From: Salpingoeca rosetta
Lineage: Eukaryota > Protista > Choanoflagellata
Direction: 5' to 3'
Length of the DNA stretch: 64,000 nucleotides
Assembly: GCA_033442325.1 (NCBI GenBank)
Contig: JAWQFM010000012.1
Span: forward strand, 1,220,405 to 1,284,404
Shown: positions 43,737 to 47,980 of the stretch, piece by piece
How positions within the stretch are numbered: position 1 is the first letter of the stretch
How the letters are laid out: every line of letters starts with the position of its first letter
Made by a program: the position numbers and the translations under genes
The notes under the pieces: model-generated
Seen by the model: the letters and a program-made list of their open reading frames with translations, nothing else
Databases searched by the model: none
What the model was told of the DNA's origin: nothing

Positions 43737-46700
43737 CTATGAGATGCAACAGCGACAGTACATGCCTTGCTCTGGTGCGGGCGGATTGTTGAGGCGGTCC
43801 TCAATGCGAGATAGAGCTGCCAACACTTCGCCCAGCTGCATCTTCCCGCCTTCGCCGCCATGAATGCCGTGTGCTGTTGTTGGTGATGATGCGGCCTGTT
43901 CAGCGGCCCTGTTGATGACATCGCGAAGTTTGTGCTCTGCGGAGAGTGCACGCGTGCGCCAGTCAATGCCATCGCTGCCAACACCCGCGCTCTTCTCGCC
44001 ACGGCTGTTTTTGCCACCACTGCCATCTGCCGACGTAGTTGTTGTGGTCGTCGTCGTCAGCGAGCCTTCTCCGGGATGCACACCGCTGCTGGCGGGTGTG
44101 TGCGGCTGAGTGTAGCGACCAACCTGCTGCAACAGCATGTGCTGCTGCGCTGCCCAGAACATGGCGTCATCCGTGGTGAAGTCGACATAGAGAAGGTTTG
44201 CGCACAGCGCGCCCAGCCACCCGTCCGGCACATACACCTCCGGGCGGATGGGAACGATTGGCTTGCCCAGCTTGTACGCATACTCGCCTGGTACAAAGTC
44301 GGAAGTGTATGCGTGTTGCGTGTGAGTGTATGCGTTGCGTGTGAGTGTGTATGTATGTACAAGGATGATGTGGTTGCGTGGATCACACGGAAAAGCATAG
44401 ACGACGATGTTGGCCCCACATCCACCAAGACGACAAAACAACAACAACAACAACAACAACAACAACAACAACAACAACAACAACAACAACAACAACAACA
44501 ACAACAACAACAACAACAACAACAACAACAACAACAACAACAACAACAACAACAACAACATCATCATACCTTCTGTGCGGCAGGGCGTGCTGGTCTTGTA
44601 CGCTTCGCAGAGACACATGACAATGACGTCGGCTTTCTCCACCCCGTCACTCATGGACTCCAAAATGCTCCCGGCCACATGATCCACATCCATCCACACT
44701 TTGTACCCGTGGCTCTCAAGCGCGTTTCGAACGCGCAGCATGAAGCTCTGGTGCTTCCATGGATATGACAGCATAATGTGACCAGGCCTCAACTGCTGCT
44801 CCTGCTGCAATTCGCCCGCCTCAGGCGCTGCCTCCGCCACCTGCGTGTGCGACACTTCTCTGACCACAGGCGCCGGTTTGTGAAGCGAAGACATGTCCGT
44901 GCTCGTGATCACGCCGCCCACATCGGTCTCCTTCACCGCTGCGTTGGTCATCTCATCATCCTCGCTGTTGTCATCATCGTCATCGTCGCTGTTGTCTGAA
45001 ACATCGTCCGCATGTCCCATCTTGAATGCGCTTTCTTCCTGTTTCTTCGCTTGAGGCACCTCCTCCTCCTCCTCCTCCTCCTCCTCCTTCCCGTCCTTCT
45101 GCTCCTCCGTCATCTTGCCGCTTGTGTCCGTTGGCATCGACAGCGCATTCGTTGCTCCATTCTCAGCAGCGTTGTTGTCATTGTCGTTTGCATCCATCGC
45201 GTTGTTGCGCTTCAAGACCTCGCCTGCCTTCGACAGTCCCATTCCCATCGCCATGCTGCCACCACCAACCTGCACCCGCGTCACTGTCGGCACAGACATA
45301 CCTGAACCACGCTCAGCGCCACCGAGGCCACCATCTTCAGTGTTTGGCGCGTCGAGTGTTGTCGCCCGCAGCATGTTGCGCCCGCGCGCCCCTGATTTCT
45401 GCTTCTGCTTCTGCTTCTGCTGCTGATTGTTGAATCGGTGGTGGGAGGCACCGCGGCGCACGCTCGCCGGCTGCCTGCTGGCTGGCGGTGCTGCTGCCTC
45501 CATGGTGTTGAGCCTCTCGATGCGGAAGATGGTCAGGCCAATGTCCTGCTTCACCTCTGGGGTCAGCACGTGTTGCGCCGGGGTACGGTGGGCGGGGTCC
45601 TCCTTTGCCTTGGAGGAGGCCTCGAGCATGCGCTTGAACACGCGGAGAATGCGGTCCTGCTGTCCGCACAGCGCGTTTGTCACAGCGAGGTTCGCAATCA
45701 CCTTGATGGCAAATTTGTCCGTCAGCCTGTCCTTTGGGCGGGATGACTCGAGAATGTCCATGACCAGGTTGAGGCATGTGTTGGCAATCAAGGGCTTGTT
45801 GCTGTCGTTGACAGAGAGGTTGGCCAGGCCTTGCAGTGGCTCCCACGGCTCCGACGTGCGGCCTGCGCAAGGATGAAACAAAGGGAAGGGAGGAGGGGGC
45901 GGAGAGACAAAACGAGAGGAGGGGTTGGGGTGCACGTGGGGTCCGTGTTCAGTTGCGGCAGCGGCAAAGTCAGATATCCGTGGGATGGATGAGAAATAGA
46001 GGGCGTAAAGTCAGAGCACGTACGCAAAATACACACACACAAAGGGAGAGCAGGCAGGCAGGCACACACACACACACACACACACACACACACACACACA
46101 CACACACACACACACACACACACACACACACACACACACACACACACACACACACACACACGCAGCGCAGGGTATCACACCTTCCAGGTCCTCGTTGGCC
46201 CAGGCCTTTTCAAGTTCTGTGTGCACAATGCCGATGATGTTGTCGCTTGCCTTGAGCAACGGGTGCTGTTCAACGTGTCCAATGAGGTTGGCAACGATGC
46301 TCGCAGCGTCTGCCGGGTGGTCCTTGGGGTTGCTCGAGTGCATGAGCGGGTGAAACAGGTTGTGGACCTTCAGCTCGCGAAGATAGGTCAAGCCCTCATC
46401 ACCAAGGTACCTGCACGCACATGTGTCAGTGAGCGAGTGAGTGAGTGAGTGAGTGAGTGAGCGAGTGAGTGTGTGAGTGAGTGTGTGTGTGTGTGTGTGT
46501 GTGCAAGAAGTGAAGGGGTCGCCCAACAGACATAAACACACACACACACACACACTTTCTTAGACAGATACACAGGCAGACAGACAGACAGACAGACAGG
46601 CACACACACACACATACAGAGACACCTTCCCCTTCCCCCTTGTTGTTTCACACACGCCTGCGCGCACCTGCAGAGGTTGCCGAGGGCGCCGTATGCGCCA

Positions 46701-47980
46701 TTCCAGACGCGGGAGTACTTTGGTGCGCGGGAAAAGACATCCACAAGCGTCTTTGCAAAGGGGCTGACGGCCTGCGAGCCGGTGGTGCTGTCCGTGCCAT
46801 TGAACAAGGCGATACCGGCGTCACCCGCGCTGCTGGCGTCGCTGGCATCCTGCACCGCATCCATGACGGTGTTGAGGATGGAGGGAAACTGGTTCAGCAC
46901 GCGACCGGCCGCGCCACCAGCAGCGTACGCCTGCATGAGGTGGCACGCCAGGCGCAGGCTTGGCTTGGCCTCAAAGCGCATTGCGGGCAGGACGGGGAAC
47001 TGCGTGGTGGTGACAAAGTCCTCCAGGAGCTTGGGGTCGCTGATGGACGCAGCAAGCTTGACGGCTGCCAGCATGGTCAGTTCCGCAAGCGGACCCTCCC
47101 CCTGCGACCAGGTGCTGGTGAAGACGCGAGCAAACGCCCGCACGGCGCTGGGGTCCGTGGAGATGGGCACCAGGTTGGTGAAGTTTTGGCTGTGGTCCGT
47201 GCCCATGATGTAGATGAGGGTGCACACGGCGTGCACGACATCGCCGGTCTTGGTGCCGGGCGCCACCACGGATGCGGCGTCCACCAGATCTGCCGTCGCC
47301 TGCAGGGCCAGCTTGAGCTTGTCAATCACACCCAGGGCCACAACGGACTCCTGCAGCTCGTTCTCCGAGGCGGATGCGCCCAGGAACAGGAGCGGCACGG
47401 GCTTCAGCGTCGGCACGAGGTTGAGCAGCTTCGTCTGCAGGTCTCCGCGCTCCAGCAGCGCCGCAGTCACCTCTGGCGCGCCGGTCCAGTTGCTCACGTA
47501 CTCCGTCAGGGCGGGCAGATCCTCCAAGTCTGCCAAGTCGTCGTGGGACTGGGCAGCGGAGACGGTACCCTGGTCGCCGCTGTCACTGCCCTTCTTGCTG
47601 CCCTGCGCTTGCTTCTGCCTGGCGTCGCAGCGCTCCAGCCACGTTTCCAGCTCCGCCATCACGGTGCTGGCAAACGCCGCGAGATCATCCTCGTCCGCCT
47701 CGTCGCTGGACGTGTCGCTCGCACTGACACTTGTGTCTTCGCCATCTTCTTCCTCGTCCTCATCGTCACTGACAGCGTTGCTGGCAGCCTCGGCGTTTTG
47801 ATGGCTGACCTCCTCCGTCTCTTTCTTCTCGGCATCAGCTGAATCAGTGGTTGTTGTCGTTGTCGTTGCAGTAGTTGCAGCAGCCGTTGCTGTATCAGTG
47901 ACCACTACACCAATATGTGGAGGCGTGTCGTCTGTCCTCGCTGAAGTGGGCGGACCCATCGCCATCTGCATGCGGTTCAT
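43737..47980 (-). CDS. ARM-repeat + TIR (TIR_2-like) protein with C-terminal CaaX, ~1128 aa
   Basis: Phase-consistent exons 47980-46668, 46410-46181, 45862-44570, 44287-43737. ARM-like helices (GALGNLC, GLANLSVNDSNK, VIANLAV). TIR: HIMLSYPW..GYKVWMDV..SILESM..GVE..Y..S..CRTE|GEYA..GKPIVP..YVPDGWLG..LYVDF. Ends CRCCIS*. Confidence 0.88.
44436..44560. repeat. (AAC)n microsatellite in the intron that splits the TIR domain
   Basis: About 40 perfect AAC units. Confidence 0.95.

Follow-up and report, generated by a model that had tools for sequence, protein, structure and literature searches.

A clade-wide, Ras-like lipidation signal on a choanoflagellate ARM–TIR protein

PTSG_07010 is a gene of the choanoflagellate Salpingoeca rosetta that lies at 47980-43737 on the minus strand of a 64,000-nucleotide stretch of contig JAWQFM010000012.1 (hereafter the window, in which all positions are given). 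Its product represents, in S. rosetta, a family of choanoflagellate proteins that combine ARM repeats, a disordered linker, a TIR domain, a short C-terminal helix and a CaaX box. The main new fact, drawn from a comparison of C-termini, is that a predicted lipidation signal resembling that of Ras proteins is conserved across one clade of these TIR proteins. Together with a glutamate at the position that is catalytic in other TIR domains, this signal makes it probable that PTSG_07010 is a TIR enzyme tethered to a membrane, a type that has yet to be described. A sequence-only reading of the window had proposed an ARM domain, an acidic linker, a TIR domain, a short helical tail and a CaaX box in a candidate membrane-anchored immune or death effector, and this overall architecture is borne out. 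The gene is already annotated but unstudied, and a literature search for it gave no match.

A conserved CaaX box at the true C-terminus

The features at this end of the gene, all on the minus strand, are as follows.

43740-44287, minus strand: coding part of exon 4, holding the second half of the TIR domain (residues 946 to ~1005), a disordered Thr/Gly-rich spacer, two short helical segments and the CaaX box; continuous RNA coverage without joints or sequence differences.
43740-43757, minus strand: C-terminal lipidation signal C1123-R-C1125-C-I-S1128, with the CaaX box CCIS at 43751-43740 and the upstream Cys1123 at 43757-43755.
43737-43739, minus strand: stop codon TAG, covered by RNA reads.
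43414-43736, minus strand: 3′ untranslated region (UTR) of ~300 nt; strand-specific RNA depth changes direction at 43376-43451.

RNA reads were aligned to exon 4 with its flank and 3′ UTR, the region of the intron 3 junction. Two raw RNA-seq runs give unbroken coverage of 43414-44287 in a single orientation, and the exon 4 reads show no internal joints, indels or base differences. The expressed open reading frame (ORF) ends in ...MYCRCCIS-stop, followed by the ~300-nt 3′ UTR. The true transcript thus terminates at the CaaX box, as proposed from the sequence, and the objection that the real transcript might end differently is therefore removed. This end has the features of a farnesyltransferase-type CaaX box, with Cys at −4, an aliphatic a2 residue and a last residue among S, M, A and Q. 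The suggestion that CCIS fits a CaaX box with a further Cys upstream accordingly holds, the protein ending in C-C-I-S-stop with Cys1123 two residues before the box.

The C-termini of 17 full-length family members were compared and placed on a maximum-likelihood tree, with the following distribution of CaaX ends.

PTSG_07010 clade (clade A): CaaX in 5/6 members (S. rosetta CRCCIS; Microstomoeca roanoka CKCTIS; Choanoeca perplexa CLLM and CCELM; one environmental sequence CVVS; Hartaetosiga balthica none).
PTSG_00208 clade: CaaX in 0/5 members.
ARM-TIR-SAM clade: CaaX in 0/4 members.

The paralogous clades together therefore hold no CaaX end (0/9), and two Salpingoeca urceolata proteins, whose placement in the tree is uncertain, end in CCTIS and CCVVS. 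Conservation of the box among relatives, which had been suggested as a check, is thus found in the orthologue clade and in these two proteins. The seven boxes (CCIS, CTIS, CLLM, CELM, CVVS, CTIS and CVVS) all come from complete ORFs, and those with a named source belong to four choanoflagellate species. A Cys at −4 is expected in ~2% of proteins; it is seen in 7/17 tree members, each of which closes with S or M and has I, L or V at a2, and in five of the seven a second Cys stands 1-2 residues upstream. The residues around the boxes cannot be aligned between members. Because the S or M ends, the aliphatic a2 residue and the upstream Cys recur despite unalignable flanks and the ~2% background rate of Cys, we argue that the distribution lies far beyond chance and that the box is under selection. 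The comparison shows the box, as judged from sequence, to be of the farnesyl type and conserved. The S. rosetta genome also encodes a set of CaaX-processing proteins: prenyltransferase subunits of the beta type at three loci and of the alpha type (PPTA repeats), an Rce1-like protease and ICMT.

An alternative is that CCIS is not used for lipidation, that PTSG_07010 is soluble and that its Cys-rich end reflects chance or a redox or metal-binding feature. The Cys at a1 is indeed unusual, and the orthologue P0004 has no box. We nevertheless regard this explanation as improbable, since it would have to account for seven independent C-a-a-S/M ends in otherwise unalignable tails, for their restriction to one clade and the two S. 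urceolata proteins with none in nine paralogues, for the rarity of a chance Cys at −4, for an a2 residue that is aliphatic every time and for the presence of the processing enzymes in the genome. As judged by titles, the searchable literature yielded no account of a TIR protein that naturally bears a CaaX box or is prenylated.

Two short segments of predicted helix precede the box.

43890-43961, minus strand: helical segment 1, residues 1055-1078 (WRTRALSAEHKLRDVINRAAEQAA), conserved in the M. roanoka orthologue P0002 as WRQRALDAEAKLKDM.
43791-43841, minus strand: helical or heptad segment 2, residues 1095-1111 (MQLGEVLAALSRIEDRL), a heptad-like stretch found family-wide and weak in PTSG_07010.

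Both of the coiled-coil segments named in the sequence-only reading, WRTRALSAEHKLRDVI, which begins at residue 1055, and LAALSRIEDRL, which falls within residues 1095-1111, are present and conserved in the orthologue; it is their coiled-coil character that is less secure, the heptad pattern of the PTSG_07010 tail being short and weak. Every family member has a heptad-like stretch in its last 110 residues, mostly at the very end, directly ahead of the CaaX box in those that have one. A coiled coil in the tail therefore characterises the family, with only modest support in PTSG_07010 itself.

The TIR domain and its glutamate

44109-44783, minus strand: TIR domain, residues 875 to ~1005, split by intron 3; TIR_2 73.6 bits, AlphaFold2 predicted local distance difference test (pLDDT) 92.3, Z 17-18 to solved TIR domains.
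44571-44573, minus strand: Glu945 codon, this putative catalytic residue lying within C-R-T-E-G-E-Y-A; supported by family conservation, profile alignment and the model helix.

The full-length protein matches TIR_2 (PF13676) over residues 877-985 with 73.6 bits (E 2.6e-20), well above the curated cut-off of 28 bits, and this is the sole Pfam match on the exons, the read-through ORF and the full protein. The TIR domain with an S..CRTE motif that had been read from the sequence is therefore present, the motif being S-T-P-C-R-T-E945-G-E-Y-A. Of the HMM scans that had been proposed, the one for TIR_2 was positive and those for Pfam Arm and SAM were negative at E up to 1. An AlphaFold model of the TIR domain, built from the 17-sequence family alignment, has a pLDDT of 92.3 and the classic strand/helix order A-E. 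Against solved TIR domains its best matches reach Z 17-18, with a root-mean-square deviation (rmsd) of 2.1-2.8 over 122-134 residues, as listed below.

Hydra TRR-2: Z 17.8
SPARTA TIR-APAZ: Z 17.5
Human SARM1 TIR: Z 16.9, rmsd 2.1, 125 residues
MyD88: Z 16.1
MAL: Z 15.3
RUN1: Z 15.1

These values are tied within ~1-2 Z units, and the highest query-normalised TM-score (0.80) is to the SPARTA TIR. The modelled fold is that of a generic TIR domain and is not specifically SARM1-like. In sequence searches of the PDB the TIR domain alone gave marginal matches, and the 17-sequence family profile was needed to obtain better ones; its best match is Cat1 (E 5.7e-6), and SARM1 is reached at E ~0.04 over the first half of the TIR domain, below Cat1, RPS4 and TLRs.

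Glu945 is kept in 16/17 aligned family TIR domains, in which the C, R, Y and A of the motif are invariant, and the motif C-R-x-E-x-E-Y-A is retained in all clade A members at an overall identity of only 26-47%. In the model Glu945 is residue 78, within a helix (73-84) that comes right after the strand at 60-64 (strand C), that is, at the alphaC position. The family profile aligns it to the glutamates of RPS4 WCVRE and Cat1 CWDE, which we take to be the catalytic glutamates of those TIR domains; with SARM1 E642 it corresponds in fold and motif, as the sequence alignment to SARM1 ends before that position. The earlier placement of this residue at the catalytic alphaC position is upheld by the conservation, the profile alignment and the model helix, all of which put Glu945 at the canonical site. 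Two members of the paralogous clade B, P0019 (H. balthica) and P0009 (Salpingoeca infusionum), carry Leu at the position of the glutamate (CRSLSEYA and ARSLAEFA), which suggests that catalysis may have been lost in part of this CaaX-less clade.

Biochemical precedent comes from a 2026 preprint (10.64898/2026.04.20.719644), according to which most eukaryotic TIR domains keep the catalytic glutamate, and another S. rosetta TIR protein, F2UB80 (1352 aa, distinct from PTSG_07010), makes cyclic ADP-ribose (cADPR) in a Glu-dependent manner. Most Glu-bearing eukaryotic TIR domains tested outside the TLR/IL-1R adaptor clades made cADPR, and most such domains did not deplete NAD+ (10.64898/2026.04.20.719644). 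Because F2UB80 makes cADPR and most of these domains spared NAD+, a signalling output is, by analogy, at least as likely for PTSG_07010 as the role of a death effector.

A protein of this kind might instead be a membrane-anchored, non-enzymatic TIR adaptor, a scaffold that recruits other TIR proteins in the manner of the animal adaptors MAL/TIRAP and TRAM and whose glutamate is kept for its structural role or as an ancestral relic. The modelled TIR domain is as near to receptor and adaptor TIR domains (Hydra TRR-2, MyD88 and MAL, at the Z values listed above) as to those of NADases; the S. rosetta genome, with its at least 38 TIR_2 matches, offers many possible partners; some Glu-bearing TIR domains are inactive in vitro (10.64898/2026.04.20.719644); and the Leu in P0019 and P0009 means that the wider family tolerates loss of the glutamate. 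What speaks for an enzyme is that the motif is kept in every clade A member although the proteins have otherwise diverged so far, and that cADPR production was the rule among the tested TIR domains of this class (10.64898/2026.04.20.719644). On balance we consider a purely adaptor role unlikely, if the most serious of the alternatives, and favour an enzymatic TIR domain.

The ARM-like domain and the family

45486-47683, minus strand: ARM-like helical repeat domain, residues ~100-640, spanning introns 1 and 2; supported by the AlphaFold2 model, Foldseek and profile matches.

Residues 1-100 are of low complexity, acidic and Thr-rich. The ARM-like region that follows, which the sequence-only reading had described as helical, has no match to Pfam Arm (PF00514) or HEAT, whether the exons, the read-through ORF or the complete protein are scanned (E up to 1); it is supported by remote homologues and by its predicted fold. 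Two word-based protein searches, one with the ORF of exons 3-4 and one with the N-terminal domain, recovered nothing beyond PTSG_07010 and a single orthologue. A profile of the N-terminal ~540 residues, made from two sequences and run against 1.84 billion representatives, returned only 30 proteins. When the 20 longer of these 30 matches were scanned with Pfam, most carried Arm and/or TIR_2, and in several relatives, for example P0007, P0009, P0017 and P0018, Pfam Arm lies within or beside the matched region. AlphaFold models the N-terminal domain as an all-helical fold of 28 helices. In Foldseek this model comes closest to beta-catenin, importin-alpha, Vac8, a designed ARM protein and axonemal ARM proteins, with a probability of 1.00 for the first four and TMt up to 0.58. 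The remote relatives and the predicted fold thus indicate that the N-terminal domain has an ARM fold and is homologous to ARM+TIR proteins. Between the two domains, the proposed acidic linker is confirmed as a disordered stretch with 45 D/E against 26 K/R in residues 641-874.

Named members of the family come from M. roanoka, H. balthica, C. perplexa, S. urceolata, S. infusionum, Barroeca monosierra and S. rosetta itself, the last being PTSG_00208. No paralogue of the N-terminal domain was found in the S. rosetta genome (55.4 Mb in 68 contigs) by single-sequence search; the later profile search identified PTSG_00208 as a distant one. The combination of ARM and TIR domains is already known from choanoflagellates, Arm having been listed among the domains that accompany their intracellular TIR domains (Richter et al. 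2018, PMC6040629).

Green algae carry ARM-TIR-SAM relatives. The only relatives of the ARM domain from outside the choanoflagellates are such green-algal proteins, P0027 and P0024 (Haematococcus), P0031 (Tetrabaena) and P0028 (Pedinophyceae), and one sea-slug protein, P0030 (Plakobranchus ocellatus), of 620 aa and with a faint ARMC5 match, whose host feeds on algae and retains their chloroplasts. Such a scattered occurrence may be due to transfer, or else to contaminating DNA in the slug assembly.

Relation to SARM1

PTSG_07010 has no SAM_1 or SAM_2 match by Pfam at E up to 1, on its exons or over the whole protein, and is therefore not a canonical SARM1, as had been noted from the sequence. 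The further description of the protein as a SARM1-like sensor-enzyme is too specific and does not survive the comparison. Structurally its TIR domain is equally near Hydra TRR-2, SPARTA and SARM1, and by profile it is nearest Cat1 and RPS4. The ARM region resembles beta-catenin- and importin-type ARM proteins rather than SARM1, which appears neither among the named or domain-scanned ARM-profile matches nor among the top 50 structures that Foldseek returned for the ARM model.

We also considered whether PTSG_07010 might be the choanoflagellate orthologue of SARM1 with SAM domains that have been lost or become unrecognisable. The order of ARM then TIR and the catalytic glutamate resemble SARM1, whose TIR domain matches the model at Z 16.9. 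Several observations make such orthology very improbable: no SAM domain is detectable at the permissive threshold above; the interval between ARM and TIR is filled by a disordered, acidic, low-complexity linker; the family profile reaches only the first half of the SARM1 TIR domain, with Cat1 and RPS4 scoring better; and the ARM profile returned choanoflagellate and green-algal ARM+TIR proteins, its one named animal match being the 620-aa sea-slug protein. In addition, the S. rosetta genome has a separate gene with SAM and TIR domains. At this locus (L001, C14:846640-847395) SAM_2 (45 bits) is immediately followed by TIR_2 (75.9 bits, the strongest TIR_2 match of the S. rosetta genome) in one 460-aa open frame, and choanoflagellate SARM1 has been defined by SAM+TIR (Richter et al. 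2018, PMC6040629). Judged by its domains, L001 is likely to be the true SARM1-like gene of S. rosetta. SARM1 orthology of PTSG_07010 was rejected on these grounds, that is, the lack of SAM, the non-specific TIR and ARM matches and the separate SAM-TIR gene.

Gene model and genomic surroundings

PTSG_07010 is a real, expressed S. rosetta gene of four exons separated by GT..AG introns. Exon-by-exon translation of the minus strand from 47980 to 43737 is 100% identical to the database entry P0001 (1128 aa), labelled 'hypothetical protein PTSG_07010 [Salpingoeca rosetta]', and whole-protein analyses were run on this entry, which equals the spliced model. The parts of the gene upstream of exon 4 are listed below.

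47980, minus strand: start ATG, read from the sequence.
46668-47980, minus strand: exon 1, residues 1-437 plus 2 nt, encoding the low-complexity acidic/Thr-rich N-terminus (1-100) and the start of the ARM-like domain; ATG at 47980, GT donor at 46667, translation identical to P0001.
46411-46667, minus strand: intron 1, GT..AG, rich in (AGTG)n/(AGAC)n repeats; junction ...GNLCR|YLGDEGL colinear with the transcript-derived orthologue P0002.
46181-46410, minus strand: exon 2, residues 438-514 plus the first base of codon 515, within the ARM-like domain; from sequence reading, with P0001 337-416 and 415-541 matching the neighbouring exons at 99%.
45863-46180, minus strand: intron 2, with a 99-nt (CA/TG)n microsatellite; junction ...NEDLEG|RTSEPWEPL colinear with P0002.
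44570-45862, minus strand: exon 3, encoding the end of the ARM-like domain (to ~residue 640), the disordered, acidic linker (641-874) and the TIR domain up to its middle (875-945); by itself this exon matches TIR_2 with 51.8 bits.
44288-44569, minus strand: intron 3, 282 nt, in frame and stop-free, with (TTG)43 on the coding strand; RNA reads bridge exon 4 to exon 3.

The third junction was observed directly. From the exon 4 boundary, 21 reads of run X19 and one contig each of X4 and X6 continue at the exact end of exon 3, the consensus of the loose ends at this boundary is the reverse complement of ...GTACAAGACCAGCACGCCCTGCCGCACAGA, and RNA depth inside intron 3 is zero. Junctions 1 and 2 are supported by the annotated model and by P0002, the complete transcript-derived M. 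roanoka orthologue, which is colinear across all three junctions. Because intron 3 is in frame and stop-free and contains (TTG)43, the naive ORF 43737-45935 shows a long poly-Leu run within the TIR domain. The intron is exactly 94 codons long, such that its retention would place a poly-Leu tract in the TIR domain just past the catalytic glutamate; no retention of intron 3 was seen in the RNA reads.

At the other end of the gene, an alternative start at the third Met (annotated start MNRMQMAMGPPTS, 47959-47980, minus strand) would give MGPPTS. N-myristoylation follows the pattern M-G-x-x-x-S, to which MGPPTS conforms; the sequence is not conserved in the orthologue, and the fit is therefore probably due to chance.

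The window has ~58% GC, and its introns are full of microsatellites, in keeping with its eukaryotic character. An Rfam scan of the whole window gave no match. Tail to tail with PTSG_07010, a convergent plus-strand transcript meets its 3′ UTR, ending near 43400-43450 by RNA coverage, and an exon of this neighbour (41897-42298, plus strand) matches the GyrI-like small-molecule-binding domain (PF06445, E 1.4e-8). On the other side, a 1394-aa open frame at 48375-52559 (plus strand) is divergent from PTSG_07010, the two starts lying ~400 bp apart, and is a candidate gene; it is of extremely low complexity, with poly-N, poly-D, poly-E and poly-S runs and R-rich stretches, and has no Pfam match. Across the genome, the TIR_2 matches counted above, 29 of which exceed the Pfam cut-off, are spread over many contigs, a large repertoire for a unicellular organism.

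Proposed mechanism

We propose that PTSG_07010 is a farnesyl-anchored, and probably also palmitoyl-anchored, ARM-TIR enzyme that cleaves NAD+ when concentrated or assembled on a membrane, with its ARM domain as a regulatory or binding module, a reading that we judge somewhat better than even. CCIS would be farnesylated on Cys1125, the last three residues removed and the new end methylated, and Cys1123 would probably be palmitoylated, as in H-Ras or yeast Ras2; the tail would therefore tether the protein to the cytosolic face of a membrane. There the TIR domain bearing Glu945 may cleave NAD+, either to produce a cyclic-ADPR-type signal or to deplete NAD+. The large ARM domain would be a ligand- or protein-binding regulatory module. 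Concentration at the membrane, with help from the terminal helices, would make it easier for TIR domains to assemble with one another, as they must in TIR enzymes to become active. Lipidation, enzymatic activity and its product, the role of the ARM domain, oligomerisation and any part in immunity or cell death are inferences.

Some observations weigh against this proposal. The model of the N-terminal domain is of moderate quality (pLDDT 67, from a two-sequence alignment). The heptad of the PTSG_07010 tail fills 5/8 core positions, a value matched by 20/300 shuffles. One clade A member, P0004 from H. balthica, lacks the CaaX box, which means that at least one lineage can do without the anchor. 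Finally, a conserved glutamate is no guarantee of catalysis, given the inactive Glu-bearing TIR domains cited in the preprint (10.64898/2026.04.20.719644).

A broader proposition, which we advance tentatively and rate at a little under even, is that the clade of choanoflagellate ARM-TIR proteins with a Ras-type farnesyl (plus palmitoyl) anchor would represent the first naturally prenylated catalytic TIR proteins, in which two-dimensional confinement at the membrane replaces the SAM or NLR scaffolds that assemble active TIR domains elsewhere.

Discussion

In bacteria and plants, and to a growing extent in animals, TIR domains are now regarded as immune enzymes that process NAD+, and the assemblies that activate them vary from the SAM rings of SARM1 to the NLR resistosomes of plants and the filaments of bacteria. 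If the proposal is true, a conserved lipid anchor on choanoflagellate ARM-TIR proteins adds a distinct principle of assembly and localisation. The position of choanoflagellates makes them informative about the origin of animal innate immunity, and the anchor would then suggest that nucleotide signalling by TIR proteins at membranes was present in the closest relatives of animals before the TLR-adaptor pathways existed. Should the TIR domain be inactive or the CaaX box unused, PTSG_07010 would be one more member of a large, uncharacterised S. rosetta TIR repertoire. S. rosetta is genetically tractable, and the predictions can be tested directly.

Other choanoflagellate and green-algal ARM-TIR proteins, including PTSG_00208 and the ARM-TIR-SAM proteins, share homologous ARM and TIR_2 domains with PTSG_07010. 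The clades differ at their C-termini: that of PTSG_07010 adds a farnesyl-type CaaX box, that of PTSG_00208 ends in a heptad helix without one, and the algal/Barroeca clade has a SAM-type end in its place (Pfam SAM in P0020 and P0027).

With SARM1/TIR-1, the animal ARM-SAM-SAM-TIR NADase, PTSG_07010 shares an N-terminal ARM-type domain upstream of a TIR domain that keeps its glutamate, TIR folds that superpose (Z 16.9, rmsd 2.1) and, plausibly, the logic of a regulatory ARM domain coupled to an enzymatic TIR domain that needs clustering. By contrast, it lacks the SAM octamerisation domains, its ARM domain of ~540 residues is beta-catenin/importin-like with no detectable homology to that of SARM1, its parts run in the order ARM-linker-TIR-helix-CaaX, and it carries a CaaX box at the C-terminus where SARM1 has a mitochondrial signal at the N-terminus.

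The ends of H-Ras (...CKCVLS) and yeast Ras2 (...CCIIS) are classical farnesyl plus palmitoyl signals. PTSG_07010 has the same arrangement of a terminal C-a-a-S/M with a second Cys 1-2 residues upstream, but on an ARM-TIR protein instead of a small GTPase and with the modification predicted. Some cytosolic TIR adaptors of animals, N-myristoylated TRAM and PIP2-binding MAL/TIRAP, likewise stay at membranes by means of a lipid or a motif that binds one, and the MAL TIR domain matches the PTSG_07010 model at Z 15.3; these adaptors are non-enzymatic and carry their signals at the N-terminus, whereas PTSG_07010 has a C-terminal prenylation box, a retained catalytic glutamate and a large ARM domain. 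The prokaryotic NADase TIR proteins SPARTA TIR-APAZ and Cat1 have the S..C..E motif in common with PTSG_07010 and provide its best TM-score (SPARTA) and best profile match (Cat1), yet they work with Argonaute or CARF partners and are activated as filaments or tetramers, without an ARM domain or a lipid anchor.

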